This document shows positions 3,001-45,468 of a stretch of 64,000 nucleotides of DNA, one piece after another. The translations under genes and the position numbers were made by a program. The first letter of the stretch is position 1; each line of letters opens with the position of its first letter. The stretch is from Haliotis rubra (Eukaryota): NCBI RefSeq assembly GCF_003918875.1, contig NW_025767209.1:186001-250000 (forward strand). Reading direction: 5' to 3'. The notes under the pieces are model-generated. The model was not told the DNA's origin, ran no database searches, and saw only the letters and a list, made by a program, of their open reading frames with translations.

Positions 3001-6000
3001 TGTGAGCTTCATGTAGGTGTGGAGACTGTGAGCTTCATGTATGTAGGTGGGGACTGTGAGCTTCATGTAGGTGGGGACTGTGAGCTTCATGTAGGTGGTG
3101 GAGACTGTGAGCTTCATGTAGGTGGGGACTGTGAGCTTCATGTAGGTGGAGACTGTGAGCTTCATGTAGGTGGGGACTGTGAGCTTCATGTAGGTGGAGA
3201 CTGTGAGCTTCATGTAGGTGGGACTGTGAGCTTCATGTAGGTGGAGACTGTGAGCTTCATGTAGGTATGGACTGTGAGCTTCATGTAGGTGGAGACTGTG
3301 AGCTTCATGTAGGTGGAGACTGTGTGATTCATGTAGATGTGGACTGTGAGCTTCATGTAGGTCGGGACTGTGAGCTTCATGTTGGTGGGGACAGTGAGCT
3401 TCATGTTGGTGGGGACAGTGAGCTTCATGTAGGTGGGAACAGTGAGCTTCATGTAGGTGGAGACTGTGAGCTTCATGTACGTGGGGACTGTGAGCTTCAT
3501 GTAGGTGGGGACTGTGAGCTTCATGTAGGTGGAGACTGTGAGCTTCATGTAGGTGGAGACTGTGAGCTTCATGTAGGTGGGGACTGTGAGCTTCATGTAG
3601 GTGGGGACTGTGAGCTTCATGTAGGTGGGGACTGTGAGCTTCATGTAGGTGGGGACTGTGAGCTTCATGTAGGTGGGGACTGTGAGCTTCATGTAGGTGG
3701 GGACTGTGAGCTTCATGTAGGTGGGGACTGTGAGCTTCATGTAGGTGGTGGGGCTTCATGTGTGAGCTTCATGTAGGTGGGGACTGTGAGCTTCATGTAG
3801 GTGGGGACTGTGAGCTTCATGTAGGTGGGGACTGTGAGCTTCATGTAGGTGGGAGACTGTGAGCTTCATGTAGGTGGGGACTGTGAGCTTCATGTAGGTG
3901 GGGACTGTGAGCTTCATGTAGGTCGGGACTGTGAGCTTCATGTAGGTGGGGACTGTGAGCTTCATGTATGTGGAGACTGTGAGCTTCATGTAGGTGGGGA
4001 CTGTGAGCTTCATGTAGATGGAGACTGTGAGCTTAATGTAGGTGGGGACTGTGTGATTCATGTAGGTGGGGACTGTGAGCTTCATGTAGGTGGAGACTGT
4101 GAGCTTCATGTAGGTGGGGACTGTGAGCTTCATGTAGGTGGGGACTGTGAGCTTCATGTAGGTGGAGACTGTGAGCTTCATGTAGGTGGGGACTGTGAGA
4201 GCTTCATGTAGGTGGAGACTGTGAGCTTCATGTAGATGGGACTGTGAGCTTCATGTAGGTGGAGACTGTGAGCTTCATGTAGGTGGGGACTGTGAGCTTC
4301 ATGTAGGTGGAGACTGTGAGCTTCATGTAGGTGGGACTGTGAGCTTCATGTAGGTGGAGACTGTGAGCTTCATGTAGGTGGAGACTGTGTGATTCATGTA
4401 GATGTGGACTGTGAGCTTCATGTAGGTCGGGACTGTGAGCTTCATGTAGGTGGGGACTGTGAGCTTCATGTAGGTGGGGACAGTGAGCTTCATGTAGGTG
4501 GGGACAGTGAGCTTCATGTAGGTGGAGACTGTGAGCTTCATGTAGGTGGGGACTGTGAGCTTCATGTAGGTGTGGACTGTGAACTTCATGTAGGTGGGGA
4601 CTGTGAGCTTCATGTAGATGGAGACTGTGAGCTTCATGTAGGTGGGGACTGTGAGCTTCATGTAGGTGGGGACTGTGAGCTTCATGTAGGTGGGGACTGT
4701 GAGCTTCATGTAGGTGGGGACTGTGAGCTTCATGTAGGTGGGGACTGTGAGCTTCATGTGTGAGCTTCATGTAGGGGAGACTGTGAGCTTCATGTAGGTG
4801 GGGACTGTGAGCTTCATGTAGGTGGGGACTGTGAGCTTCATGTAGGTGGAGACTGTGAGCTTCATGTAGGTGGGGACTGTGAGCTTCATGTAGGTGTGAG
4901 ACTGTGAGAACTTCATGTAGGTGGGGACTGTGAGCTTCATGTAGGTGGGGACTGTGAGCTTCATGTAGGTGGGGACTTCATGTGAGCTTCATGTAGGTCA
5001 TGTAGACTGTGAGCTTCATGTAGGTGGAGACTGTGAGCTTCATGTAGGTGGGGACTGTGTGAGCTTCATGTAGATGTGGAGACTGTGAGCTTCATGTAGG
5101 TGGGGACTGTGAGCTTCATGTAGGTGGAGACTGTGAGCTTCATGTAGGTGGAGACTGTGTGAGCTTCATGTAGGTGGGACTGTGAGCTTCATGTAGGTGG
5201 GGACTGTGAGCTTCATGTAGGTGGGGACTGTGAGCTTCATGTAGGTGGGGACTGTGAGCTTCATGTAGATGTGACTGTGACTTCATGTAGAGCTTCATGT
5301 AGGTGGGGACTGTGAGCTTCATGTAGATGGAGACTGTGAGCTTCATGTAGGTGGGGACTGTGAGCTTCATGTAGGTGGGGACTGTGAGCTTCATGTAGAT
5401 GGAGATTGTGAGCTTCATGTAGGTGGGGACTGTGTGAGCTTCATGTAGGTGGGGACTGTGAGCTTCATGTAGGTGGAGACTGTGAGCTTCATGTAGATGG
5501 AGACTGTGAGCTTCATGTAGGTGGAGACTGTGAGCTTCATGTAGGTGGGGACTGTGAGCTTCATGTAGGTGGAGACTGTGAGGCTTCATGTAGGTGGAGA
5601 CTGTGAGCTTCATGTAGGTGGGGACTGTGAGCTTCATGTAGGTGGAGACTGTGAGCTTCATGTAGATGGAGACTGTGAGCTTCATGTAGGTGGGGACTGT
5701 GAGCTTCATGTAGGTGGGGACTGTGAGCTTCATGTAGGTGGGGACTGTGAGCTTCATGTAGGTGGGGACTGTGAGCTTCATGTAGGTGGGGACTGTGAGC
5801 TTCATGAGCTTCATGTTCAGGTGGGGACTGTGAGCTTCATGTAGGTGGGGACTGTGAGCTTCATGTAGGTGGGGACTGTGAGCTTCATGTAGGTGGGGAC
5901 TGGGGACATGTAGGTGTGAGCTTCATGTAGGTTGGGACTGTGAGCTTCATGTAAGGTGGAGACTGTGAGCTTCATGTAGGTGGGGACTGTGAGCTTCATG

Positions 6001-8370
6001 TAGGTGGGGACTGTGAGCTTCATGTAGGTGGGGACTGTGAGTTTCATGTAGGTGGGGACTGTGAGCTTCATGTAGGTGGGGACTGTGAGCTTCATGTAGG
6101 TGGGGACTGTGAGCTTCATGTAGGTGGGGACTGTGAGCTTCATGTAGGTGGGGACTGTGAGCTTCATGTAGGTGGGGACTGTGAGCTTCATGTAGGTGGA
6201 GACTGTGAGCTTCATGTAGGTGGGGACTGTGAGCTTCATGTAGGTGGGGACTGTGAGCTTCATGTAGGTGGAGACTGTGAGCTTCATGTAGGTGGGGACT
6301 GTGAGCTTCATGTATGTGGAGACTGTGAGCTTCATGTAGGTATGGACTGTGAGCTTCATGTAGGTGGAGACTGTGAGCTTCATGTAGGTGGGAGACTGTG
6401 ACTGTGAGCTTCATGTAGGTGGAGACTGTGAGCTTCATGTAGGTGGGGACTGTGAGCTTCATGTAGGTGGAGACTGTGAGCTTCATGTAGGTGGGGACTG
6501 TGTGAGCTTCATGTAGGGTGTGGACTGTGAGCTTCATGTAGGTGGGGACTGTGAGCTTCATGTAGGTGGGGACTGTGAGCTTCATGTAGGTGGGGACTGT
6601 GAGCTTCATGTAGGTGGGGACTGTGAGCTTCATGTAGGTGGGGACTGTGAGCTTCATGTAGGTGGGGACTGTGAGCTTCATGTAGGTGTGGACTGTGAGC
6701 TTCATGTAGGTGGGGACTGTGAGCTTCATGTAGGTGGGGACTGTGAGCTTCATGTAGGTGGGGACTGTGAGCTTCATGTAGGTGGGGACTGTGAGCTTCA
6801 TGTAGGTGGGGACTGTGAGCTTCATGTAGGTGGGGACTGTGAGCTTCATGTAAGCGGAGACTGTGATTCGTGTAGGTGGGGACTGTGAGCTTCATGTAGG
6901 TGGGGACTGTGAGCTTGATGTAGGTGGAGACTGTGAGCTTCATGCAGGTTGGGGCTATGAACTTCATGTAGGTGTGAACTGTGAACTTAATGTAGGTGGG
7001 GACTGTGAACTTCAAGTAGGTTGACACTGTGAGCTTCATGTAGGTGGGGACTGTGAGCTTGATGTAGGTATGGGGCCAGTGAGGTGGAGACTATGACCTT
7101 CATGTAGGTGGGGACATTGAGCTTCATGTAGATGGAAACTGTGATATTCATGCAGGTGGGGACTGTGAACTTCATGTAGGAGGAGACTGTGAGCTTAATG
7201 TAGGTGGAGACTGTGAGCTTCATGCAGGTATGGACTATGAAATTCATGTACGTGTGGACTGTGAACTTCATGTCGGTGGGGACTGTGAGCTTCATGCAGG
7301 TGGGGACTGTGAGCTTCATGTAGATGGCGACTGTGAGCTTCATGTAGGTGGGGACAGTGAGCTTCATGTAGATGGAGATTGTGAGCTTCATGTAGGTGGG
7401 GACTGTGAGCTTCATGTAGGTTGGGACTGTGAGCTTCATGTAGATGGAGATTGTGAGCTTCATGTAGGTGGGGACTGTGAGCTGCATGTAGGTTGGGACT
7501 GTGAACTTCATGTTGGTGAAGACTATGAGCTTCATGTAGATGGAGACTGTGTTATTCATATAGGTGGAGACTATGACCTTCATGTAGGTGGGGACAGTGA
7601 GCCTCATCTAAGTGGAGACTGTGAGGTTCATGTAGGTGGAGACTGTCAGCTTCATGAAGGTGGAGACTGTGAGCTTCATGTAGGTGGAGACTGACCTTCA
7701 TGTAGATGGAGACTGTGTGATTCATGTAGGTGGGTACACTGAGCTTCATGTAGGTGGGGACACTGAGCTTCATGTAGGTGGGGACTGTGAACTTCATGTT
7801 GATGGAGGCTGTGTGATTCATGTAGGTGGGGACTGTGAGCTTCATGTAGATGGAGACTGTGAGGTTCATGTAGGTGGAGACTGTGAGCTTCATGAAAGTG
7901 GAGACTGTGAGCTTCATGTAGGTGGAGACTGACCTTCATGTAGATGGAGACTGTGTGATTCATGTAGGTGGGTACACTGAGCTTCATGTAGGTGGGGACT
8001 GTGAACTTCATGTTGATGGAGGCTGTGTGATTCATGTAGGTGGGGACTGTGAGCTTCATGTAGATGGAGACTGTGTGATTCATGTAGGAGGACACTGAGA
8101 GCTTCATGTAGATGGAGACTGTGTGATTCATGTAGATGTGGACTGTGAGCTTCATGTAATTTGGGACTGTGATCTTCATGTAGGTGGGGACAATGAGTTT
8201 CATGTATGTGGAGACTGTCAGCTTCATGTAGGTGGGGACTTTGAGCTTCATGTAGGTGGGGACTGTGAGCTTCATGTAGGTGGGGACTGTGAGCTTCATG
8301 TAGGTGGTGAATGTGTGCTTCACGTAGAAGGGGACTGTGAATTGTTATGTGGATGGGGACTGTGTGCTTT
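1..8370. repeat. 24-bp tandem satellite (GTGAGCTTCATGTAGGTGGGGACT)n, continuing off the 5' edge of the window
   Basis: The unit is directly visible, with several hundred copies. The 8-aa periodic ORFs (CELHVGGD / MKLTVPTY / HEAHSPHL) are translations of the unit. Copies degenerate beyond ~6850. Confidence 0.98.
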
Positions 8371-11928: not shown

Positions 11929-12894
11929 TCACGTAAGTCTCTGAATCAAGAACAATGTCTGTACAAATTGGAAAAAAACACAATATTTAAGAAGGTCAAG
12001 AATATGTAATAGTCCATGGGACTTTGCAGTATCTGCTGCTGTTTTTCCTTTCTTGTTCCTGGCGTTAATGTCAACTGAGTCCTGTGCTAGGACATACTTC
12101 ACCACCTCTATATTACCTCCCTCACAGGCAGTGTGAAGGAGGTGGTTGCCACTGACATCGACCAGTGACACGTCAGCTCCTTCACTCAGGAGGAAGACTA
12201 CCACTTCCTTATGTCCATTTTTTGCCGCTTCCATCACAGGAGTCCTACCCCGGAAGTCTCTACTATTGATGCCCACATTGTCCTGTGCAAGGACATACGT
12301 CACCGTCTCTACATCTACCCCCTGACAGGCAAAGTGAAGGATGTTCCTACCTTTTTCATTGACCAGTGACACATTAGCCCCTTTTCTCACGAGGAGCTCT
12401 ACCACGTCCTTATGTCCAGTTTCTGATGCAACCATCAGCGGTGTTCTCATCATCCTGTCTCCTCTGTTAATGTCCAATATATTTTGCGAGAGGACATACT
12501 TCACTATTTCCACATATCCTCCCCGACAAGCAGCGTGGAGGACATTATCACCTCTTTGATCGACCAGTGACATATCAGCTCCTTCACTCACGAGGAAGTC
12601 TACAACTCCCCTACGCCCGTTCTTTGCTGCTAACATCATAGGAGTCATACTCCTAAAACCTCTACTATTGATGTCCACATTGTCCTGTTCGAGGACCTGC
12701 TTCACCGCCTCCACATCTCCTCTCCGACAGGCAACGAGAAGTTTTTTGTTACGTCTTTTGTTGCCTTTTTTATTGATCAGTGACATATCAGCTCCTTTAC
12801 TCGGGAGCTCTACTACTCCCTTATATTCCCTTGCTGATGCAACCGTCTCCAGTGTCTTCCTTGACAAGTCTGGACTGTTGATGTCGATTATGTT
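11929..12894 (-). CDS. Ankyrin-repeat protein, large terminal coding exon (about 8-9 ANK repeats)
   Basis: Repeated TPLMxAAxxGHxxVVxLLxxxGAD and NxLHxACxGGxxExVxYVL motifs. Acceptor ...cttttgatttcag| lies at 12895 with an in-frame TGA just upstream, so this is a phase-0 exon. Confidence 0.9.
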   Translation of the reverse strand, partial: NIIDINSPDLSRKTLETVASAREYKGVVELPSKGADMSLINKKGNKRRNKKLLVACRRGDVEAVKQVLEQDNVDINSRGFRSMTPMMLAAKNGRRGVVDFLVSEGADMSLVDQRGDNVLHAACRGGYVEIVKYVLSQNILDINRGDRMMRTPLMVASETGHKDVVELLVRKGANVSLVNEKGRNILHFACQGVDVETVTYVLAQDNVGINSRDFRGRTPVMEAAKNGHKEVVVFLLSEGADVSLVDVSGNHLLHTACEGGNIEVVKYVLAQDSVDINARNKKGKTAADTAKSHGLLHILDLLKYCVFFQFVQTLFLIQRLT

Positions 12895-25564: not shown

Positions 25565-26630
25565 TATACCATTAAAAAAAAGAAACGCATAACCCAGAAA
25601 TTTGTTGCGAAAATGTTGTATTTTCAAAAATGTATAACCCGTCCACAAACAGACTTCAGGAAATGATTTTTTGCATCAGCTTAGAAGAAGGAAATGTCTA
25701 TACAACCAAGTGGATAATTTTACATAACGGAGACACTGAGCGCCATGGTGGCGACGTAGCACGGACCCGACGTCGGGTCTCCTGGCTCTCAGTCCAATCT
25801 CTCTCAACCCGTTCCGTACAGCTTGATCGGATATCCTCCGAAGTCCAGGCACCCTAGCTGCTGTGCTCTCACCCGTGGCAGTACGATCAAGCAGATGTAG
25901 TACCTGGATGTACCGATCTTGGACTACAGTGGTGACTCGAGGTCTGCCTGTACGGGGAGGGTCATTTGTTATACCTGTTTGGTTGTAAAGAGTTGTAAGC
26001 CGTGATATCGTGCTCAGACTAACATTCAAACGCCTGGCAACAGACGATTGGTAATCTCCAGCGTGTAATCTTCCAATGGTGATGTTCTGTGTCGCAGCGT
26101 CAAGACGTGGCGTAGTGATTTGACCTTGCAACTCCTTCAAAACGAATGCCGATTTCCGAAAGTAATCTGGATTTTTATAACTTCTTTGAGTGGCATATTA
26201 GAAGTTGGGAAGTACAATATAGAACAAACTTTATGGATAATAACTTTTTATGCAACGTTTCGATATAGATTCTTGTACCGTTGACAACGGTACAAGAATC
26301 TGTAATCGGAACGTCGCACTCACGAATAAAAAGAAGTTGTTATCCATAAAGTTTGTTCTATATTGGATTTTTATAGCCAAACAGTGCATGCTTTTTGCTA
26401 CACAATTTAAACTGGAAAGAGATTTCTGTTAGGTTGTGGTGACGCCTTTTTAATCTTTGTAAGAAATCTCATCAGAATCAGTATTTTCAGGTAAAGTCGA
26501 TTTTTTGGGGTGTAAAATCATGTTATCAACATTTTTGTTACATATTTTGACGATTGTTTGAACACAATAGGCAATTAATAGATTTTAAAGAATACAAAAC
26601 GCCTATGCGTTTCTTTTTTGGGATAGTATA
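25565..26630 (-). mobile_element. Tc1/mariner DNA transposon relic, internally deleted
   Basis: Imperfect TIRs (tac.at..aaaaaagaaacgcata / tatgcgtttcttttttgggatagta) flanked by TA. ORF 25676-26140 encodes the paired HTH region and the GRPR motif; the DDE domain is missing. Confidence 0.85.
26180..26363. mobile_element. Palindromic insertion (Penelope-like remnant or MITE) with a 12-bp target-site duplication
   Basis: TGGATTTTTATA at 26168-26179 and 26364-26375. Nested inverted arms caatatagaacaaactttatggataa / ttatccataaagtttgttctatattg and agattcttgtaccgttg / caacggtacaagaatct. Confidence 0.65.
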
Positions 26631-26985: not shown

Positions 26986-27087
26986 ATATTTGACATGAAT
27001 TTAAAAAAAAAATAATTTAAAAGGCAATATAAAACGCAGAACCAGAGTCAGGTGACGCCACATTTATTGCATGGTCGGGCTGTGTCT

Positions 27088-27164
27088 TTATTTTCCAGAC
27101 ACTACACATCCCCAGCAGAACAGGCACCATCCACCCCACCATCTCTTAGACCGGTTCCTCACAG
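27088..27164 (-). CDS. BRICHOS gene exon 6 (AVRNRSKR-WWGGWCLFCWGCVVSGK*)
   Basis: ttcgcttccacag| acceptor in phase 1, stop TAA at 27090-27088, poly(A) signals downstream. Confidence 0.85.
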
Positions 27165-30100
27165 CTGTGGAAGCGAATAATTGGTTTTTGTATTAGTGAT
27201 TAAACCTGATAAAAATATCGCTGTATCTCTACATCAACACAGCTGTGTACTTTACGGAAGCCGTTTTGGGCCACTCTGGTTGGGTTTTGAGGACATTAAA
27301 AATTTATTTTGAAATTTCAAGATGATGATCTTCAAATTTTAAAATCTTATCTTGACATTTAAAGATCATTGTCTTGAAATTTAAACTTTATGTGAATCTC
27401 GAAATTTCATTTTAGCATCTTCAAATATCAACCTTGGTATTCTTTTCGATATTACTTACAGATGAAGTTGAAAACTTACCACCTCTTTTCGCGGTTACTC
27501 TCGGGACATCTGAAATAGCAATTGTTTACTTGACTACAGCATTTGCATCGTGTAAGCCAGATAAGATTAAAATAACCAGATGACATAAGGATTATTGACG
27601 TCCAGCTGAGTATTGCATATGATCAACCATGACTACGCATCCAATACATATTTAATCTCGTACTCTTGACATATTTGGCTCGTTTCGAAAGGTCGAGAAA
27701 GGACCTCCTGATAGCTCATAGTTTTGTGTGGTGCGCAACGATGACAACCGCTCACCTGCAGCAGCCCTGATCACTTTGCCGTCTTGGAGGAGATGCACTT
27801 TGCAGCCGCTACAGAACTTTGCTATCCTCTTTCCCACTTTCTGTTCGATCTCTTCTGCAGGTAATGGCGTTTTGGGAACGACCCACTCTTCAGTAGCTTG
27901 AACCTTTGGTGCTTTCTCTCCCTGCATGGTGAACACAGGATGAACAGAATGATAGGTTGAGTGAGTGAGTTTAGTTTTACTCCACACTCAGCAATATTCC
28001 AGTTACATGGCGGCGGTCTGTGAAACATCAAGTCTGGACCAGACAATCCTGTGATCAACATCATCGATCCACGCAACTGGGATACGATGACATGTGTCAG
28101 CCAAGTCAGCGAGCCTGACCACCCGATCCCGTTAGTCGCCTCTTATGACAAGCATGGGTTACTGAAGATCAATTCCAAGAAAGAAAGAAAAAGTGTCAGC
28201 GAAAATGGAATAAAATAATGAAAAGCCTCAGTTGCAATATGCATCAGCTGTTAATGTGACACACCTTTTCGATGTTGTCTACGACCTTCTTAATGTCGTC
28301 GTATGTCTCGTCAGATGGCTTCACAAAACAAGTATTTTTTTCGGTGATCTTCATAGCCACTAAGCCCTGCAAAATATACATGAAATAGACGTTTAACTGG
28401 CATATGTCAGATATTTAATACTGTCTCTGAATTTCAAATTTGTTTCCATAATTTATGTTCAGTTTGTTGCAACAATCTTCACCGATTCTCTATCCTACTA
28501 ACCAAGATGTTATTCAATTCCTTGCGCCCCCCTGAACGACCTCATGTAGATGGGTAGCAGCTATCAAATATGTCATCACCCATATACATCACGATGTATG
28601 TTTCTTTGAGAGAGTTATAATTTTAAGTAAGCGTTGTTTCAGCCATGCAGTGACAAGAACAATTTTATTTTTACACATAATATTAATTTAAGCGATTTCT
28701 GTTTAAAACACGCTACAACATGAACTTTGCCACGTCGCTAGCTACCATTGAGCACTTATTTCAGATGCATATATACCTTTGTAAAGTCATGGTAGTTGAT
28801 TATATACAACAATTCAAAACACGTTAAGGCAGCTGAAGGCCTTGGCTAGGTCACTAGCTGGAGATCATGGAGCACTTATTTCAGATGCATATGTACCTTT
28901 GTAAAGTCATGGAACTTCACTATTTGTAAAGTCATGGCAGTTGAGTATTTGTAAAGTCATGGCAGTTGAGTATTTGTAAAGTCATGGTAGTTGACTACCG
29001 TTTAAACCACACAAAGGCAGCCTGACCTTTATACGGAGCATATATTTCAGATGCACGTGTACCTTTGTAAAGTCATGGTAGTTGATTGACTTCTTGAAGC
29101 ATTTTTGAGGCGGGTCAGGTGTTCCTGGGTAGGTTATCATACTGTTGTCGTGCAGCTCGATGTCCATAGGGATGACCTCTCCATTCCCGGGTGTCACGGC
29201 ACCGTGAGCAAACTATAATATAGAGAGATTGTCCTCAGTATACCGTGATTAGAAGTACAAAGTCTTGATCTAAGATATAACCTTGATTTGAACATACCAT
29301 GATATAACGAATACCATTTTTCCTCACATGCCAAACACGTCTGAAAGTTTGGCATGGCTACAATTCACTTCCTAAACTGTGATGATCACGTGGAAAATAA
29401 CGTACAGTATCGTGAGCACACTGGACAATAACGTACATTATCGTGAGCACACTGAACAATAACGTACTGTACCGTGAGCACTCTGGACAATAACGTACAT
29501 TATCGTGAGCACACTGGCCATTAACGTACATTATCGTGAGCACACTGCACAATAACGTACTATTTCGTGAGCACACTGGACAATAACGTACAGCATCTTG
29601 AGCACACTGGACATTAACATACTGTGTCGTGAGCATATTGGACAATAACGTTCTGTACCGTGAGCACACTGGACAATGACGTACAATATATTGAGCACAC
29701 TGGACAATAAAGTTCTCTATCGTGAGCACACTGGACATTAACATACAGTATCTTGAGCACACTGGGCAATAACGTACAGTATCGTGAGCACACAGGACAA
29801 TAACGTACATCATATTCATCACACTGGACAATGACGTACAGTATCTTGAGCACACTGGACAATAACGTACAATATCTTGAGCACACTGGACAATAACGTA
29901 CAGAATCGTAAGCACACTGGACAATAGCGTACAATATCATGAGCACACTGGACAATAACGTACAGTATCTTGATCACACTGGACACTAGCGTACAGTATC
30001 GTGAGCACACTGGACAATAACGTACAGAATCGTGAGCACACTGCACAATAACGTACGGTATCATGAGCACACTGGACAATAACGTACAGTATCATAAGCA

Positions 30101-33100
30101 CACTAGACAATTAAGCACAGCAGCGCGAGCACATTGGACAATATCGTACAGTATCTAGAGCACACTGGACAATAACGTACTGTATCGTGAGCACACTGCG
30201 CAATAACGTACAGTATCGTGAGCACACTGTACAGCATCGTACAATATGTTTAGCACACTGGACAATAAAGCACTGTATCGGAGCACACTGGGCAATAACG
30301 TACAGTATCGTGAGCACACTGTACAGCATCGTACAGTATGTTTAGCACAATGGACAGTACAGCATAGTATCGGAGCACACTGGACAAAAACGTACAGTAT
30401 CGTGAGCACACTGGACAGTAAAGCACAGTATCGGAGCACACTGAACAATAAAGCACTGTATCGTGAGCACACTGGACAATAACGTACGGTATCGTGAGCA
30501 CACTGGACAATAACGTACAGTATCATAAGCACACTAGACAATTAAGCACAGCAGCGCGAGCACATTGGACAATATCGTACAGTATCTAGAGCACACTGGA
30601 CAATAACGTACTGTATCGTGAGCACACTGGGCAATAACGTACAGTATCGTGAGCACACTGTACAGCATCGTACAGTATGTTTAGCACACTGGACAATAAA
30701 GCACTGTATCGGAGCACACTGGGCAATAACGTGCAGTATCGTGAGCACACTGTACAGCATCGTACAGTATGTTTAGCACACTGGACAATAAAGCACTGTG
30801 TCGTAGCACACTGGACAATTACGTACAGTATCTTGAGCACACTGGACAGTAAAGCACAGTATCGGAGCACACTGGACAAAAACGTACAGTATCGTGAGCA
30901 CACTGGACAGTAAAGCACAGTATCGGAGCACACTGAACAATAAAGCACTGTATCGGACGGAGCAGACTGGACAAAAACGTACAGTATCGTGAGCACACTG
31001 GACATTAACGTCCAGTATCGTGAGCACACTGGACAATAACGTACAGTATCTTGAGCACACTGGACAGTAAAGCACAGTATCGTGAGCACACTGGACAATA
31101 ACGTGCAGTATCGTGAGCACACTGGACAATAGCGTACAGTATCCTGAGCACACTAGACAATAACGTACAGTGTCTTGAGCACACTGTACAATAACGTAAA
31201 GCATCGTGAGCACACTGGACAATAACGGAAAGAATTGGGAGCACACTGGACAATAGCGTACAGTATCGTGAGCACACTGGAAAGTAAAGCACAGTATTGT
31301 GAGCACACTGGACAATAACGTACATTATCTTAAGCAGACTGGACAATAAGGTACTCTATCGTGAGCACACTGGCCATTAACGGACAGTATCGTGAGCACA
31401 CTGGACTATAACGTAAAGTATCTTGAGCACACAGGACACTAAAGCACAGTGTCTTGAGCACACTGGACAATAACGTACTGTATCTTGGTCACATTGGACA
31501 ATAAAGCACACTATCGTGAGCACAGTGGACAATAAAGCACTGTATCTTCAGCACACTGGACAATAACGTACGAAATCGTGAGCACACTGGACAATAACGT
31601 ACTGTATCGAGAGCACATTGGACAATATCGAAAAGAATCGTAAGCACACTGGACAATAAAGCACAGTATCGTGAGCACACTGTACAACATCGTACAGTAT
31701 CTTTAGCACAGTGGACAATAACGTGCAGTATCGTGAGCACACTGTACAATAAAGTACTGTATCGTGAGCACACTGGGTAATAACGTACAGTATCGTGAGC
31801 GCACTGGACAATAGCGAACAGTATCTTGGGTACACTGGACAATAACGTAAAGCATCGTGAGCACACTGGCGAATAAAGCACAGTATCGTGAGCACACTGG
31901 ACAATAACGTTCAGTATCGTGAGCACACTGGACAATAAAGCACAGTATCGTGAGCACACTGGACAATAACGTACAGTATCTTGAGCCCACTGGACAATAG
32001 TGTACAGTATCGTGAGCACACTGGACAAAAACGTACAGTATCGTGAGCACACTGGACAATAAAGCACTGTGTCGGAGCACACTGGACAATAACGTACAGT
32101 ATCGTGAGCACACTGGACAGTAAAGCACAGTATCGTGAGCACACTTGACAATAACGTGCAGTATCGTGTGCACACTGGACAATAACGTACAGTATCGTGA
32201 GCAAATTGGGCAATAACGTACAGTATCTTGAGCACACTGTACAATAACGTACAGCATCGTGATCACACTGGACAATAACGTACAGAATCGTGAGCACACT
32301 GGACAATAACGTACAGTATCGTGAGAACACTGGAAAGTAAAGCACAGTATTGTGAGCACACTGGACAATAACGTACATTATCTTAAGCACACTGGACAAT
32401 AAGGTACTCTCTCGTGAGCACACTGGCCATTAACGGACAGTATCCTGAGCACACTGGACAATGGCGTACAGTATCGTGAGCTCACTGGACAATAAAGCTC
32501 TATATCGTGAGCACACTGCACAATAACGTACTGTTCCGTGAGCACACTGGACATTAACGTTCAGAATCGTCAGAACACTGGACATTCAAGTACTGTATCG
32601 TGGGCACATTGGACAATAACGTTCTATATCCCGAACACACTGGACAATGACGTACAATATATTGAGCACACTGGACAATAACGTACAGTATCTTGAGCAC
32701 ACTGGACAGTAAAGCACAGTATCGTGAGCACACTGGAAATAAAGCTCAGTATCCTGAGCACACTGGACAATAACGTACAGTATCGTGAGCTGACTGGACA
32801 ATAACGTACAGAATTGTGAGCACACTGGACAATAGCGTACAGCATCGTGAGCACACTGGACAATAACATACAGTATCGTGAGCACACCGGACAGTAAAGC
32901 ACAGTATCGTGGGCACACTGGACAATAACGTACAGTATCCTCAGCACACTGGACAATAACGTACAGTATATTGAGCACACTGGACAATAAAACACAGTAT
33001 CGTGAGCACACTGGTCAATAACGAACAGTATCGTGAGCACACTGGACAATAACGTACAGTATCTTGAGCACACTAGCCAGTAAAGCACAGTATCGTGAGC

Positions 33101-36100
33101 ACACTGGACAATAAAGCACAGTATCCTGAGCACACTGGACAATAACGTACAGTATCCTGAGCACAGTGGACAATAACGTACAGTATCGTGAGCACACCGG
33201 ACAGTAAAGAACAGTATCGTGAACACACCGGACAATAACGTACTGTATCTTGGTCACATTGGACAATAACGTACAGTATCGTGAGAACACTGGACAATAA
33301 CGTACTGTATCGTGAGCACACTGGACATTAACGTACAGAATCTTGAGCACACTGGACAATATCGTAGAGTATATTGAGCACACTGGACAATAACATACAG
33401 TATGGTGAGTACAATGGGCAATAACGTACGCTATCTTGAACACTAGGGACAATAACGAACAACGTCGTGAGCACACTAGACAATAACGTACAATATCGTT
33501 AGCACACTGGACAATAACGTACAATAGCTTGAGCACACTGGACAATAACGTACTGTATCGTGAGCACACTGGACAATAACGTACAATATCTTGAGCACAC
33601 TGGACACTAACGTACATTATCGTGAGCACACAGGACAATATGGTACAATATCTTGAGCACACTGGACAATAACGTACAGTATCTTGAGCACACTGGACAA
33701 TAACGTACTGTATCTTGAGCACACTGGACAATAACGTACAGTATCCTGAGCACACTGAACAATAACGTACTGTATCTTGAGCACACTGGACAATAACGTA
33801 CAGTAACGTGAGCACACTGGACAATATGGTACAATATCTTGAGCACACTGGACAATAATGTTCAATATCCTGAGCACACTGGACAATAACGTACAGTATC
33901 TTGAACACACTGGACAATAACGTACAGTGTCATGAGCACACGGGACAATAACGTACAGTATCGTGAGCACACTTGACAATAACGTACAGTATGGTGAGCA
34001 CACTGGACAATAACGTACAGTATCGTGAGCACACTGTACAATAAAGTACTGTATCTTGAGCACACTGGGCAATAACGTACAGTATCGTTAGCACACTGTA
34101 CAATAACGTACAGTATCATGAGCACACTGGACAATAACGTACAGCATCGTGTTCACACTAGACAATAACGTACAATATCTTGAGCACACTGGACAATAAC
34201 GTACAGTATCGTGAGCACACTGGACAATAACGTACAGTATCCTGAGCACACTGAACAATAACGTACTGTATCGTGAGCACACTGGACAATCACGTACAAT
34301 ATCTTGAGCACACTGGGCAATAACGTACACTATCTTGAGCACACAGGACAGTAACGTACAGAATCGTGAGCACACTGGACAATAACGTACAATATCATGA
34401 GCACCCTCTATTACTACCTACAGCATACTGAGCACATTGGACAATAACCCATAGCATTCTGAAAACACTTAACTGTACTGTGTTTCACGAATTGGGGACG
34501 TATACCGATGGTTATATAGCCGCAAATTTAGTTATAACGGCGACGCGTAAACAGCGTTACCCCTTTAGTTTAGAGATACATTCAAAGGTTTTGGTGAATC
34601 GGTTTTCAATATGCTGATTATACGGTCAGAAATTTATAGCATTGACCTCAGAACTCGTGTTACATACTAAGTTGAATTAGAATAGAATATAACGTACAGG
34701 ATAGTGAGCACACTATGTTATTACCTACGGTCTACTGAGCACACTGGACAATAACGCACAGTATCATTTAGAAATAAGGTTAGTTGATTCACGCAAAACT
34801 GAAGTATAATGTATAGTGCTTTGAATGTCGTGGTACATTTAGAGTGAGTGAGTGAGTTATTATTTAACGTCACATCGGCAATATTTCAGCCATGTCGTGA
34901 CGAGAACATATGTGACATTGAAATGGAATAGATGTATATTATAAAAACCTGTCCACGAAGGACAGTAAAACAACTAGAATATCACAATTACAACTAAAAC
35001 TATTGTGGAAAATTAAACTGATAGCATTATTTGGACAATACAATATAAAAACTGGCTATAGATCGCCAACAACCGAAGGTAGATCACCAAACTAGGGACC
35101 ATGGGGACTTACATTACTTTTGCTATCTGCATGGACCCTAGTTGGATTTATATCATCCCTTCAGCCGCTGGCGATTGAAGTCAAATTTAGCCAAAATTAA
35201 AATGACAAGAATACTACATTTAAAACAGCTGGTAAATTTAAATTTCCTTTGAATGTTTCAGGACTTACGTACCCTCTCAGGAGGACAATAATTTTACGCT
35301 ACTTCAACCCCCTTTGAGGGTACAGCCACTAACAATCTCAGTTACTAATCTAAACTACCAATAATAAAATATATATCTATTTACAAATCAGTTAACAAGT
35401 CTAATTCTTTTTAAAATGCAATAATTAAATGAGAACTTATATTACTAAAAAGATCCTTCATAGTTTGTGATTTGAAATAGAAATCCCTTGTGATGGAATA
35501 TTCAACACAGTCAAGCAGGACATGATTGACCGTGATTCTTTCATCACAAGGGATACAAAACGGAGGATCCTCACCTTTTAATAAGTACTCATGAGTATGT
35601 CTAGTGTGGCCAATACGACATCGTCGTGTGATGACCTCTTCAAATCTGGACTGACAACCCAAGTAGGTGTAACCGATAGTTGGTTTTAGTGCATGTAATT
35701 TATTGATACCTACTTGGGTGTCCCACTTCTTTTGCATCAGATCACGGATATAACATCTAATAGCAGCTTTGTAATCAGAGTATGGGATCAGAGGTGGTGT
35801 CACAGATTTGTTGAGTGCTGCCTTATCAGCACGATCGGCCATTGTGTTCCCAGAAATGCCAACGTGGCTGGGTAACCAACAAAAGACGATGTCGTATTGG
35901 CCAGTAGCGAGCTCATTATACAATTCAATCATTTCAAATGAAAGTGGATGTTTACAAGAAAGATTCTTAAAAACCTGAGGACACGAAATAGAATCGGAAC
36001 ATATTATGTATTGTTTATATTTACGGTGTTTATTAATATATTTAAGAGCTGTTAATATGGCGTTTGCTTCTGCTGTGAAAATAGAGCTGTTATTTGGTAG

Positions 36101-36628
36101 TCGAAAGGATATTGTTCTGGATCCAATGACAGAGGGTACATTTAGAAATAAGGTTAGTTGATTCACAGGTAACTAAAGTAGAATGTGCAGCGCCCTGAAT
36201 GACACAGCTCATGTAGAAATAAGGTTAGTTGATTCACGGGTAACAAAAGTAGTGTTCTCGTCACTATATGGCTGGAATAATGCCGATGTGACGCAAAACC
36301 CAACTCAACCTCATTCCAACCTCAATCCAACTAAAGTAGAATGTACAGCGCCCTGAATGACACAGCTCATGTAGAAATAAGGTTAGTTGATTCACGGGTA
36401 CCTAAAGTAGAATGTACAGCGCCCTGAATGACACAGCTCATGTAGAAATAAGGTTAGTTGATTCACGGGTAACTAAAGTAGAATGTACAGCGCCCTGAAT
36501 GACACAGCTCATGTAGAAATAAGGTTAGTTGAAACACGGGTAACTAAAGTAGAATGTACAGCCCTTACCTCTGTTGTTCCGCTTGCTCCATGCAGAAGCA
36601 GTGCGACGAGAGTGGCCACAGCAAACAT
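27088..36628 (-). CDS. Secreted BRICHOS-domain prepropeptide, 194 aa, 6 coding exons (36628-36569, 29212-29063, 28366-28265, 27921-27756, 27509-27480, 27164-27088), with C-terminal peptide WWGGWCLFCWGCVVSGK after RSKR
   Basis: All five introns are GT-AG with consistent phases (0,0,0,1,1). The exons total 585 nt, an open frame ending in TAA. Signal peptide MFAVATLVALLLHGASG; BRICHOS hallmarks YHDFTKGLVAMK...TCFV...IAKFC...VHLL; furin site; AATAAA signals overlapping the stop and at 27063-27068. Confidence 0.88.
27480..27509 (-). CDS. BRICHOS gene exon 5, 30-nt micro-exon (DVPRVTAKRG)
   Basis: gctatttcag| ... GTG|GTAAGT, symmetric phase 1-1. Confidence 0.75.
27756..27921 (-). CDS. BRICHOS gene exon 4 (GEKAPK...IAKFCSGCKVHLLQDGKVIRAAA)
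   Basis: catgcag| ... CAG|GTGAGC, 166 nt, containing the second conserved BRICHOS Cys. Confidence 0.9.
27958..28177 (-). mobile_element. SINE family B (MESC/Meta-like core) in BRICHOS intron 3
   Basis: Reverse complement contains aattgatcttcagtaacccatgcttgtcataagaggcgactaacgggatcgggtggtcaggctcgctgac, with a (TCAC)n tail. Confidence 0.85.
28265..28366 (-). CDS. BRICHOS gene exon 3 (GLVAMKITEKNTCFVKPSDETYDDIKKVVDNIEK)
   Basis: ttttgcag| ... AAG|GTGTGT, 102 nt, containing the first conserved BRICHOS Cys. Confidence 0.9.
29063..29212 (-). CDS. BRICHOS gene exon 2 (FAHGAV...SINYHDFTK)
   Basis: tattatag| ... AAG|GTACAC, 150 nt, ending in the BRICHOS HDF motif. Confidence 0.88.
29390..34450. repeat. 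31-bp satellite (GAGCACACTGGACAATAACGTACAGTATCGT)n, about 160 copies, in BRICHOS intron 1
   Basis: Tandem units are directly visible. The Cys-rich ORFs here are frame-cycling translations of the unit. Confidence 0.97.
34844..36134 (-). mobile_element. 5'-truncated RNase H-bearing LINE (I/Nimb-like) with (TCAC)n tail and 12-bp TSD
   Basis: ORF 35411-36130 with SSIFTAEA, IICSDS, WLPSHVGISGNTMADRA and a C-terminal CxxC..H..C. TSD GGTACATTTAGA at 34832-34843 and 36135-36146. Confidence 0.9.
36142..36562. repeat. 71-bp tandem repeat (TAGAAATAAGGTTAGTTGATTCACGGGTAACTAAAGTAGAATGTACAGCGCCCTGAATGACACAGCTCATG), about 5 copies, plus a displaced unit at ~34768-34843
   Basis: Period 71 (36372, 36443, 36514). 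The array starts a few bases inside the intron-1 donor. Confidence 0.9.
36569..36628 (-). CDS. BRICHOS gene coding exon 1 (signal peptide MFAVATLVALLLHGASGTTE)
   Basis: ATG at 36628 and donor GAG|GTAAGG. The acceptor tattccctcag| at 36645 implies an upstream non-coding exon. Confidence 0.75.
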
Positions 36629-36869
36629 AGCGGCTCGCAAGTACCTGAGGGAATAATACTCGAATATTCTAAACAGGGATAGTCATTTATCAATATCTGA
36701 AATACGTTTGTATTTGTTTTGTTTGATTTTGTCAGTCCTTACATAACATACATGTAAGTACCGTTTCCCTGTCACTGTTTCCATGTTACGACGTTACTTT
36801 ACACCAAACACACCTTGTACCAATATCTCGCCACCCACTTTACGCAGTATAGATGTTAATCCCTACGGA

Positions 36870-37025: not shown

Positions 37026-37899
37026 AATCCCTACCGGTGGAATGCCCTTATGTCAGGTTAACCCAGCATCCTACTGGTCCGGAGACGGGTTTTTGTGACA
37101 CGCTGTTACCTTGAAGTTGCCTTAGGTTTCTTTCATGGTAATGAAAATCCCTCGTATTTACAGTGTTCCAATAGTGCCGTCCACCCATAGTATTTAGTGG
37201 CAAGGAATGAGTTTAGTTTTACGCCGCTTTTAGCAATATTCCAGCAATATCACGGCGGATGAGTGAATGCTTTAGCCACTAGGCTACCCCACCGCCCCGA
37301 TTGAGTGAGAGACACTGCACACCACCGTCTTGCCATCAACTTAATGATCGACACCATACATCAACAAAGAAGGCAATTAAAACACTCAGAGTGACCTGTC
37401 TCAAATCTAATAATATCACATCATGCAGAAAATAGATTTTTTAAAATGTTTGAAAAATATACACACCAAAACATGTCTCTTCAGTGATCCCCACAGCTGG
37501 AACTGCTGTCCAGTCGAGTTCCTGACAAGCTTATAAACATGAACCAACACATGTTCGCACCTCAGTGTTAAAATATGACGTTTCACCTGCATCATACCTT
37601 CTGACCTTTGTCTGCATGTTTCTGACAGACACGGATTTAAATTATTTTACGATGAACATTAATCATGTCAGAATATGTGGATAATTAACACAGAGGTCAC
37701 AGTTTTGATCTCTTGCGATCTTCTGTCAGATAAACGTGAAGAACTTCAATACCAAATTTACAGTTTTATGATGTGATAGTTTGATTACAGTTTAACCAGG
37801 AGATGAGTGCATTAGTCGGGGAAACAGTTATTATTTTCAGGGAATGGTGGTAAACACGCTCAGTATGTACTTGTCATGATGAAGAACCTATGTGTACTA

Positions 37900-43861: not shown

Positions 43862-45468
43862 AATAATAATAATAATAATGGATATTTTTAGCGCGCCATT
43901 TTCCACCCACTGATACATGCTCAAGGCGCTACATAAAAGCATACATACAATGCATACAGAGGATAAAATAGCAAAATAAGTATACATTGAAATTGATGAC
44001 AGAAAGATTGATTTTAGGGATAGGCTTTGGAAAAAAAGAAAGTCTTCAACTTAATTTTGAAAGTTTCCAATGTGGGAGACTGCTTTATGTGGAGAGGGAG
44101 AGAATTCCACAGAGTAGGACCAGCGTACTGGAAAGACCTCTTGCCAAAAGAAGAAAGGAGAACTTTGGGAACGGAGAGAAGACATTGGTCTTGAGATCTG
44201 AGAGTTCTGGTTGGGGAGTACACAGTGAGAAGTTCAGAGAGATATGAAGGAGCTTGATTATGCAAACATTTATACACAATGCAAAGAAGTTTGAAGTGAA
44301 TCCGGAACTTGATTGGAAGCCAGTGTAATGATGAGAGTACAGGGGTGATATGGTCTCGTTTAGTGGTAAGGGATATAATACGTGCTGCTGTATTTTGGAC
44401 TTTTTGTAGTTTATTGAGATGTCCGTTGGTGAGACCGTATAGAAGGCTATTACAGTAATCCAATCTGGATGTTACAAGGCATCTCACAAGAGTGTGGGCA
44501 CTTTCCATTGTGATGTGCTTCCTAATCGTCCCAATGAGTCTGAGGTGGTAATAGCAGGTATGACACAACTTATCTACATGCGAATCTAGAGACAGGCCCG
44601 AATCAATATAAGCACCAAGATCTTTTATCAAAGCTGACGGTGTGATGTTAGCTGAACCAATCTTCACACTATCGATGTTAAATTTCTCCAAGCTCTTTGG
44701 TTTCCCAACAAGGAGAACCTCTGTTTTAGTGTCATTCAGTATTAGTTTTCTGCCCGTCATCCATGTCTTGATTTCCAGAGTACAATTCTCAATCTCTTTC
44801 AACGTTGATTGGGCATTATTTGGTCTGAACTTTGTCAGGAGTTGGTTGTCATCTGCATAGGAAAAGTGTGGTATTAAAAATTTGTCACTGATCAGAGAGA
44901 GTTGGTTGATGTAAATCAGGAAGAGCACTGGGCCTAGAACAGATCCCTGTGGAACTCCACATGACAGAGTAATCTTCTGTGAGATGCTGCCCAACACTGT
45001 GACTGACTGGTGTCTAGCAGACAGGTATGAAGAGAACCAGGCCAGTGCTTGTCCGCCGATTCCAGAGTGATTTTCAAGAGTATGGAGAAGAATCTTGTGG
45101 TCCACAGTGTCAAATGCCGCACTCAGATCTAAGAGTGTCAGAATTGCCACGTCACCTCTATCAACCAGGCATCTTAGGTCATTTACCACTCTAAGAAGGA
45201 GAGTTTCGGTAGAGTGGTGTGGACGGTAAGCTGATTGGTACTCATCTAAGATGCTGTTGCTTGACAAGTGACCCATCAACCTCTTGGTAGCTGCTCTCTC
45301 GATAAGTTTGGAGAGAAAAGTCAGATTAGAAACGGGGCGGTAGTTTTTAAAGTCATTTTTGTCAAGTTTTGCATTTTTAACTAGTGGCATGATAACAGCA
45401 TCTTTTAGCATATGTGGAAAGATCCCAGATGACAGACTCTTGTTGATGATTTCCGTTAATGTCGGCCC
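43862..45468 (-). mobile_element. L2-clade LINE, 5'-truncated, with an intact RT C-terminal ORF (465 aa, 45411->44014)
   Basis: NYRPVSNL, LLDLSAAFDTVDH, GVPQGSVLGP, YADD, SRLDYCNSLL and LHWLPI motifs, followed by a 3' UTR with an (ATT)n tail. Confidence 0.95.

Follow-up and report, generated by a model that had tools for sequence, protein, structure and literature searches.

We analysed a 64,000-nucleotide (nt) stretch of the abalone Haliotis rubra (NCBI RefSeq assembly GCF_003918875.1, contig NW_025767209.1, positions 186,001 to 250,000; hereafter the window), in which an earlier sequence-only reading had proposed a gene for a peptide precursor carrying a BRICHOS domain. Six exons, all on the minus strand and joined by GT-AG junctions at each intron, were located by a six-frame translation k-mer scan and spliced to 585 nt, which end in a TAA stop codon and encode exactly the 194-residue protein of that reading. 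None of these exons stands intact in the list of open reading frames (ORFs) of the window, as had been noted at the time. The protein combines a predicted signal peptide, a BRICHOS domain, the basic motif R-S-K-R and a short tail rich in tryptophan and cysteine, an arrangement that suggests a BRICHOS-chaperoned precursor of a secreted peptide.

Exon 1 (36569-36644) encodes the hydrophobic putative signal peptide, MFAVATLVALLLHGASG|TTE. Its coding part had been read from an ATG at 36628 (36628-36569), to which RefSeq adds eight residues, MFWYLRAA, from an in-frame ATG at 37474: the RefSeq protein begins MFWYLRAAM, and the coding end of a 5' exon (ATGTTTTG|gt, 37467-37474, minus strand) was recognised by the match of ATGTTTTGgt at 37474. 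From this 5' exon come two complete codons and part of a third, at the start of the extension; exon 1 therefore starts at 36644, with its acceptor just before that position, and the RefSeq gene spans 37474-27088 in window coordinates. Exon 2 (29063-29212, 150 nt, residues 21-70) covers an N-terminal beta region and the start of the BRICHOS domain, including the invariant H-D-F, exon 3 (28265-28366, 102 nt, residues 71-104) covers BRICHOS strands and helix 1 with the invariant Cys83, and exon 4 (27756-27921, 166 nt, residues 105-159 plus one base) covers BRICHOS helix 2 and the last strands with the invariant Cys141. The Pfam match to BRICHOS (residues 65-147 in the 194-residue protein) extends from 29080 to 27793 and is broken by introns 2 and 3. 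Exon 5 (27480-27509) is a cassette micro-exon of 30 nt that encodes (D)VPRVTAKRG and with it an extra KR site. Exon 6 (27088-27164, 77 nt including the TAA stop at 27090-27088) carries R-S-K-R (residues 174-177, 27142-27153), a proprotein-convertase consensus at which cleavage is predicted, directly before the tail WWGGWCLFCWGCVVSGK (residues 178-194, 27091-27141), which has a CxxCxxC motif, four tryptophans and a terminal Gly-Lys that may be read as an amidation signal. An AATAAA polyadenylation signal (27063-27068, minus strand) lies 19 nt 3' of the stop codon.

The sequence itself is not new, and the earlier description of the precursor as hidden does not hold, given that the gene product is already in the databases. 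A script comparison matched the 194 residues letter for letter to residues 9-202 of XP_046585425.1 (202 residues; P0017 in our numbering of family proteins), which is isoform X2 of Haliotis rubra LOC124292387 and bears the RefSeq name "uncharacterized protein". The locus of isoform X1 (L004; GCA_003918875.1, QXJH01000516.1, 203088-233474) and window positions 17088-47474 are 100% identical over 30,387 bp; because of this identity, the window can be assigned to H. rubra, in line with the gastropod source deduced from the letters alone, and the gene counts as already annotated. What is new is the proposal that a mollusc makes a peptide precursor chaperoned by its BRICHOS domain, whose uncharged Trp/Cys cargo would be cleaved and amidated. 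Among the other annotated isoforms, X3 (P0016) skips the 30-nt exon 5, and in X1 (P0008) the exon-5 donor is read through, intron 5 is kept and there is no tail. Gnomon, the NCBI annotation pipeline, proposes such variants only where there is transcript support. A literature search by the LOC identifiers returned no matches.

The 5' exon also contains a longer upstream ORF (37595-37467, minus strand), beginning MMQVKRHILTLRCEH..., and RefSeq isoforms of the paralogue LOC124260255 join the 5' exon directly to exon 2, without the signal-peptide exon. The arrangement probably reflects an upstream ORF or an artefact of annotation, and not an isoform that stays in the cytosol.

The BRICHOS domain of the window protein was confirmed by sequence and, in predicted structures, by fold. 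All full-length tests used residues 9-202 of P0017, verified by script to be identical to the protein first read. Pfam profile PF04089 matched it with 33.6 bits against a gathering score of 25 (expectation value (E) 4.7e-8, profile positions 8-90 of 91), and every relative tested also passed, the paralogues scoring 29.5-39.7 bits. When single exons were submitted, exon 3 alone matched PF04089 (E 0.045), and a search with the exon-4 ORF retrieved Haliotis proteins with a precomputed BRICHOS domain. In P0017 numbering, H74-D75-F76, C91 and C149 do not vary among 11-13 family members; in the AlphaFold model D75 sits at the end of strand 70-75, C91 within strand 90-95 and C149 just past helix 143-148. 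The BRICHOS hallmarks described by Sanchez-Pulido and Ponting include an Asp at a strand end and a Cys pair (PMC9714404), and both are present throughout the family, where the two cysteines would form a disulfide.

Judging from the predicted structures, the similarity extends to the BRICHOS fold, a central beta-sheet with two flanking helices. AlphaFold reached a predicted local distance difference test score (pLDDT) of 36 with a 3-sequence alignment, and core values of 75-94 with an 11-sequence family alignment (A4). The best 30 Foldseek matches in AFDB Swiss-Prot were all BRICHOS proteins (chondromodulin-1, tenomodulin, ITM2A/B/C and gastrokine-1/2/3), with E from 4e-9 (4.3e-9 for the best) to 6e-5 and template modelling (TM) scores of ~0.45-0.55. 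The AFDB cluster library returned "Preproalvinellacin" (E 2.4e-5) as well as matches that, from their accessions, we take to be BRICHOS proteins of Lottia, Crassostrea, Mytilus and Lingula, and the top cluster by shape in the ESM Atlas was a mollusc BRICHOS cluster; the tail alone gave an uninformative score of 0.65 in the same atlas. The AlphaFold DB libraries were decisive for the fold; matches in the PDB were weak, with ependymin and LolA on top (E ~0.03) and pro-surfactant protein C (2YAD) at rank 48 with a probability of 0.85, and a sequence search of the PDB with the family profile found no significant match (E 1.7 for the ITM2B BRICHOS domain, 8rnu). Thus, two of the checks that the sequence-only reading had named, a Pfam search and an AlphaFold/Foldseek comparison, returned BRICHOS, and the layout it had described stands. 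As in the BRICHOS superfamily, whose members carry a signal peptide or a signal-anchor, an N-terminal signal peptide is predicted: the N-terminus is hydrophobic (Kyte-Doolittle maximum 2.8, residues 1-12) and modelled by AlphaFold as a helix (residues 3-20), and the cleavage site was read by the -3/-1 rule only (A-S-G before TTE).

We found the relatives of the gene in a single genus. Two profile searches of a 5.8-billion-protein collection yielded 13 clusters, all from Haliotis (H. rubra 5, H. cracherodii 4, H. rufescens 2, H. asinina 2) and all labelled "uncharacterized"; no relative outside Haliotis was detected through sequence in this collection, although such a search needs shared words and absence is not thereby proven. 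A full HMMER scan with exon 4 as the query, over 1.84 billion representatives, likewise gave nothing credible outside Haliotis, the two matches from elsewhere being false positives in helicase-associated-domain repeats. As found so far, then, the window gene appears to belong to a BRICHOS family limited to Haliotis, and tblastn with divergent paralogues revealed no second family gene within the window. Genes reconstructed from loci of H. cracherodii and H. rufescens have six coding exons each with GT-AG junctions; exons 3-5 measure 102, 166 and 30 nt in these two species and in H. rubra, and exon 2 has 147 nt in H. rufescens but 150 nt in the other two. Three members lie on one H. cracherodii scaffold at 3.6, 8.6 and 34.4 Mb, and the family is therefore dispersed rather than tandem.

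The gene is under purifying selection. The ratio of non-synonymous to synonymous divergence (dN/dS, Nei-Gojobori) was 0.19-0.35 for the whole gene. In the tail, three of the five pairs compared showed full or near saturation of synonymous sites, with dN of 0.27-0.46; the pairs with an estimable dS gave dN/dS of 0.24 (two H. cracherodii paralogues) and 0.32 (window gene versus H. rufescens). Because dN of the tail was below dS wherever the latter was estimable, the reading frame of exon 6 is under selection, and the frame that had been proposed for the tail is conserved across species and in paralogues. Mean pairwise identity was 0.38 in the tail versus 0.64-0.70 in the domain.

A segmental duplicate of the whole locus (L001; H. 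rubra QXJH01000516.1, 672075-697594; LOC124292404, P0003) lies ~450 kb away on the same contig, in the opposite orientation, and its flanks are 92-96% identical to the window locus. It looks like a degenerate copy: the second half of exon 2 is gone, exon 6 is preceded by AA where the acceptor should read AG, a net 8 nt are missing from the tail-coding part, and what RefSeq models as P0003 is the product of a shifted frame. Substitutions in L001 are clustered in the 55 tail-coding nt, around which the flanks are ~95% identical. In H. cracherodii, at L007:15053-15150 (the gene of P0013), the annotated model ends in unrelated sequence; an open frame, ...SISRRQNIEGTVARAANGWCLFCLKCKVSA*, lies ~380 nt past exon 4 behind a good acceptor and is in frame only through a GC donor at the usual end of exon 4. 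This gene could be either mis-annotated or a copy that is losing its tail. The H. asinina protein P0009 keeps RAKR-WGGWCIFCLRC and then continues for ~60 residues in the frame of what is the 3' untranslated region in the window, an extension that could stem from a frameshift or from loss of the stop codon, either in H. asinina itself or in its assembly.

Across H. rubra, H. rufescens, H. cracherodii and H. asinina, what is conserved at the C-terminus is a basic site followed by G-(G)-W-C-xx-C-xx-C. The tail reads RSKR-WWGGWCLFCWGCVVSGK in the window, RSKR-WGGWCLFCWGCKTSGK in H. rubra paralogues, KSKR-WGSWCVFCWGCKARGK in H. rufescens, and TKR-GGWCFLCFGCAAVGR and, in another member, AKR-GGWCLFCFWCAAVGR in H. 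cracherodii. For this GGWC clade the motif in full is a basic site, (W)GGWC-xx-C-xx-C and xxx-G-K/R. A K/R-R pair occupies the same place in every member of the clade, and all five intact members end in G-K/R (GK in P0017, P0020 and P0010; GR in P0002 and P0004). The tails of divergent members read GGCILCWSC... (P0012), GDGWCVLCIKCKITI (P0014) and KCEVACVSC... (P0015). In prohormone biochemistry R-X-K-R is a site for furin or other proprotein convertases (PCs), and precursors that end in Gly plus a basic residue are marked for trimming by a carboxypeptidase and for amidation. In the window protein R-S-K-R is followed by 17 residues, which places a convertase site, at the level of sequence, where the BRICHOS superfamily has one. 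The predicted product would thus be a 15-mer, WWGGWCLFCWGCVVS-amide, with three cysteines and four tryptophans, and its counterpart in a paralogue would be WGGWCLFCWGCKTS-amide. With the Gly-Lys removed, the 15-mer has a K+R count of 0, a D+E count of 0 and a grand average of hydropathicity (GRAVY) of 1.13. Before trimming, the tails of the GGWC clade contain 1-3 K+R per 15-16 residues, one of which is the terminal basic residue, and hydrophobicity is lacking from the tails of several paralogues (GRAVY -0.04 to -0.19). Literature searches matched the mature peptide to no described family, which agrees with the impression gained at first sight.

Given these features, the reading that we favour, and hold with moderate confidence, is that the gene encodes a secreted pre-pro-protein of ~200 residues whose tail would be shielded by the BRICHOS domain, released by a convertase, amidated and deployed as a membrane-active defence effector. 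After removal of the signal peptide behind HGASG, the domain would shield the very hydrophobic, aggregation-prone tail in the secretory pathway until a furin/PC-type convertase cuts after RSKR177. A carboxypeptidase would then trim the C-terminal Lys and peptidylglycine amidating monooxygenase would convert the Gly, leaving the uncharged 15-residue WWGGWCLFCWGCVVS-amide with its three cysteines. In the last step, the weakest of the series, the peptide would act as a secreted, membrane-active defence effector by hydrophobic, Trp-mediated insertion and not by cationic attraction. We infer shielding and convertase release from BRICHOS pro-proteins and worm peptides, and amidation from prohormone biochemistry. 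Release of the C-terminal peptide by a convertase is a general rule for BRICHOS pro-proteins (PMC9714404), the antimicrobial BRICHOS peptides of worms follow it too (PMC6265681), and the same peptides serve as a model for both shielding and release (PMC13001179). A secreted effector is favoured by the number of paralogues, several in each genome, by tails that are more divergent than the domain and by the concentration of the changes in L001 in the tail. Since the predicted peptide has no charged side chain and the pro-region is not acidic, it is not a classic cationic BRICHOS antimicrobial peptide, and hydrophobic, Trp-driven membrane insertion or self-assembly is more plausible than a cationic mode of action. 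Going further, we propose only tentatively, and with the chances somewhat against it, that abalones make an undescribed class of BRICHOS-chaperoned peptides of 13-15 residues that would be uncharged, Trp-rich, tri-Cys (CxxCxxC) and amidated, and that could act through hydrophobic insertion into membranes, through assembly of dimers or functional amyloid, or through thiol or metal chemistry.

Several observations weigh against the favoured reading. The predicted peptide lacks any charged side chain, unlike every characterised BRICHOS antimicrobial peptide, and the pro-region (residues 18-173), with 24 K+R versus 22 D+E and an isoelectric point (pI) of 8.3, is not acidic; the arenicin-type antimicrobial analogy drawn earlier is weakened accordingly. 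The tail has no confident structure in the AlphaFold model (pLDDT 28-40). Of the divergent members, P0012 and P0014 have no terminal G-K/R, and P0014 and P0015 have no dibasic pair directly before the motif. Exact-protein look-ups of P0017, its residues 9-202 and P0001 retrieved no transcript contigs; only the alternative RefSeq isoforms imply RNA support for the window gene. Furthermore, the tail cysteines are spaced CxxCxxC and not nested as in typical BRICHOS hairpin disulfides, and the odd one may keep the tail disulfide-tethered to the pro-domain. This last point leads to an explanation without any processing, in which the gene would encode a gastrokine-like secreted BRICHOS protein, the basic stretch would be a linker and the tail would be retained, with the whole protein functioning, for example, as a mucosal or extracellular chaperone. 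With three invariant cysteines in the pro-region and three in the tail, the odd one on each side may pair across the cleavage site, the candidate in the pro-region being the otherwise unpaired Cys58. Size and topology are gastrokine-like (TM 0.51-0.55 by hit), some paralogues show no clear dibasic site directly before the motif, and the tail-less isoform X1 suggests that the BRICHOS part may have a role of its own. However, R-S-K-R is a full furin consensus, the K/R-R pair keeps its place throughout the GGWC clade, the conserved terminal Gly plus basic residue is hard to explain without C-terminal processing, and convertase release is the norm across the superfamily (PMC9714404). On balance, we regard an unprocessed protein as unlikely.

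If the precursor is processed and amidated, its peptide could also be a receptor-acting signal, such as a hormone, neuropeptide or pheromone, and not a defence effector. A dibasic site combined with a C-terminal Gly-Lys/Arg is the classic prohormone signature, and the strong conservation of core residues despite saturated synonymous divergence would fit a receptor ligand. We nevertheless consider a signalling role improbable: the multiple paralogues per genome and a decaying copy with tail-concentrated changes look more like an effector family, a GRAVY as extreme as 1.13 would be unusual in a soluble ligand, and no BRICHOS precursor is known, from reviews or otherwise, to yield a neuropeptide. 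Hydrophobicity of the C-terminus also bears on whether a peptide is made at all, as the signal peptide, the small residues G169 and A170, the polar spacer and the 14-residue hydrophobic end could together form an attachment signal for a glycosylphosphatidylinositol (GPI) anchor, and the product would then be a membrane-tethered BRICHOS protein. This is highly improbable because specific residues, and not merely hydrophobicity, are conserved. GPI signals conserve hydrophobicity alone, whereas here the three cysteines, G-G-W and the terminal G-K/R are maintained, several paralogue tails have GRAVY values of -0.04 to -0.19, and the spacer is strongly basic and contains the furin site.

The introns of the gene are rich in repeats. 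A 31-bp minisatellite of ~163 copies with 82% matches (29391-34448, noncoding) occupies most of the 7.3-kb intron 1 and accounts for dozens of long minus-strand ORFs that are rich in Cys and Val but spurious; at the paralogous locus L001 the same minisatellite extends over ~0.9 kb only (L001:12125-12993). Intron 1 further holds a 71-bp tandem repeat (36329-36562, 3.3 copies, 97% matches) that begins 7 nt past the exon-1 donor. Intron 2 contains, at 28898-28994 and 28759-28872, a tandem repeat with a 25-bp unit (3.9 copies) that stems from the 3' end of exon 2 and re-encodes NYHDFT, together with a decayed and incomplete second copy of that exon (43% identity, tblastn E 0.001); both the exon-2-derived repeat and the partial copy are shared with L001.

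Elsewhere in the window, mobile-element remnants include an RNase H ORF within intron 1 (35414-36166, minus strand, 26.4 bits) and a reverse-transcriptase ORF (44017-45411, minus strand, 105 bits); listed with them is an ORF just downstream of the gene (25679-26140, minus strand) with a weak match to the helix-turn-helix profile HTH_29 (25.0 bits, below the cut-off of 28.1). A 312-residue ankyrin-repeat ORF (11932-12867, minus strand; Ank_2, 173 bits) is probably an exon of a neighbouring gene. The dense, overlapping long ORFs on the minus strand at 835-8323, one of which has a weak cornifin/SPRR-like low-complexity match, probably represent repetitive sequence.

According to one review, the family of antimicrobial BRICHOS peptides "seems to be restricted to marine worms" (PMC6780910); another describes it as "only found in polychaetes" (PMC9756803), and reviews of 2025-2026 give annelid (including echiuran) examples only (PMC11767717, PMC13001179). 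Literature searches on BRICHOS with Haliotis or mollusc terms found no paper on such precursors in molluscs. Besides reviews and papers unrelated to molluscan BRICHOS, they returned one primary study of a mollusc, a Mytilus transcriptome, which lists an up-regulated "BRICHOS domain-containing protein" beside a defensin-like protein and an amidating monooxygenase (PMC4203926). This is circumstantial and serves as a lead only. At present, no approach to new beta-hairpin antimicrobial peptides is more productive than the mining of BRICHOS pro-proteins (PMC13001179), and all products of this approach so far come from annelids. A conserved, multi-copy family in abalones, built on the same precursor logic, would bring molluscs into the BRICHOS-peptide system, with a chemically very different cargo that is neutral, Trp/Cys-rich and apparently amidated. 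If the tentatively proposed new class of peptides exists, no BRICHOS-peptide system outside annelids would precede it, and independent recruitment of the BRICHOS-plus-convertase module for quite different cargo in Lophotrochozoa would be implied. The abalone family would also offer a natural chaperone-client pair in which to study how BRICHOS handles an extremely hydrophobic peptide, and a candidate effector for aquaculture research in commercially important, disease-prone species; as the peptide has only 15 residues, the hypothesis is cheap to test.

Among other known BRICHOS proteins, the gastrokines (GKN1-3) resemble the window protein in being secreted proteins of ~185 residues with a signal peptide and a BRICHOS domain, and they give the best TM normalised by hit (0.51-0.55), but they have neither an RSKR site nor a Trp/Cys tail, and to our knowledge no C-terminal peptide is released from them. 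Pro-surfactant protein C, a fold match through 2YAD (probability 0.85, TM by target 0.59), is alike in that BRICHOS chaperones an extremely hydrophobic, aggregation-prone segment of its own precursor, as we infer for the abalone protein; its client, however, is an N-terminal transmembrane poly-Val helix, whereas the abalone client would be a C-terminal peptide behind a furin site. The ITM2A/B/C proteins are structural matches as well (E 1e-5 to 1e-6, TM ~0.5), while ITM2B shows no detectable sequence similarity outside the BRICHOS core (8rnu, E 1.7). The peptide of ITM2B, or Bri2, is closed by a single Cys5-Cys22 loop, and it is neither Trp-rich nor amidated, unlike the predicted abalone peptide. 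Bri2 is, moreover, a type II membrane protein with a signal-anchor, whereas a cleaved signal peptide is predicted for the window protein. In both, BRICHOS is followed by a furin site before a short, Cys-containing C-terminal peptide (Bri23, 23 residues, in Bri2; PMC9714404).

A close parallel in precursor design is with the annelid BRICHOS peptides (arenicins, alvinellacin, capitellacin, nicomicins and HfBRI peptides), which share with the window protein a pre-pro-protein of ~200 residues made up of a signal peptide, a BRICHOS pro-region, a basic site and a short, Cys-containing C-terminal peptide; preproalvinellacin is also a structural match (E 2.4e-5). In annelids as in abalones, these are multigene families, and the mature peptides are unrelated between lineages. 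The abalone family differs in belonging to the Mollusca and in its pro-region (pI 8.3), which is not acidic, whereas that of nicomicin is described as acidic (PMC6265681). Finally, where annelids release a cationic hairpin with one or two nested disulfides, the predicted abalone peptide has no charged side chain, is Trp-rich with three cysteines spaced CxxCxxC, and is followed in the precursor by a Gly-Lys that would serve as a signal for amidation.

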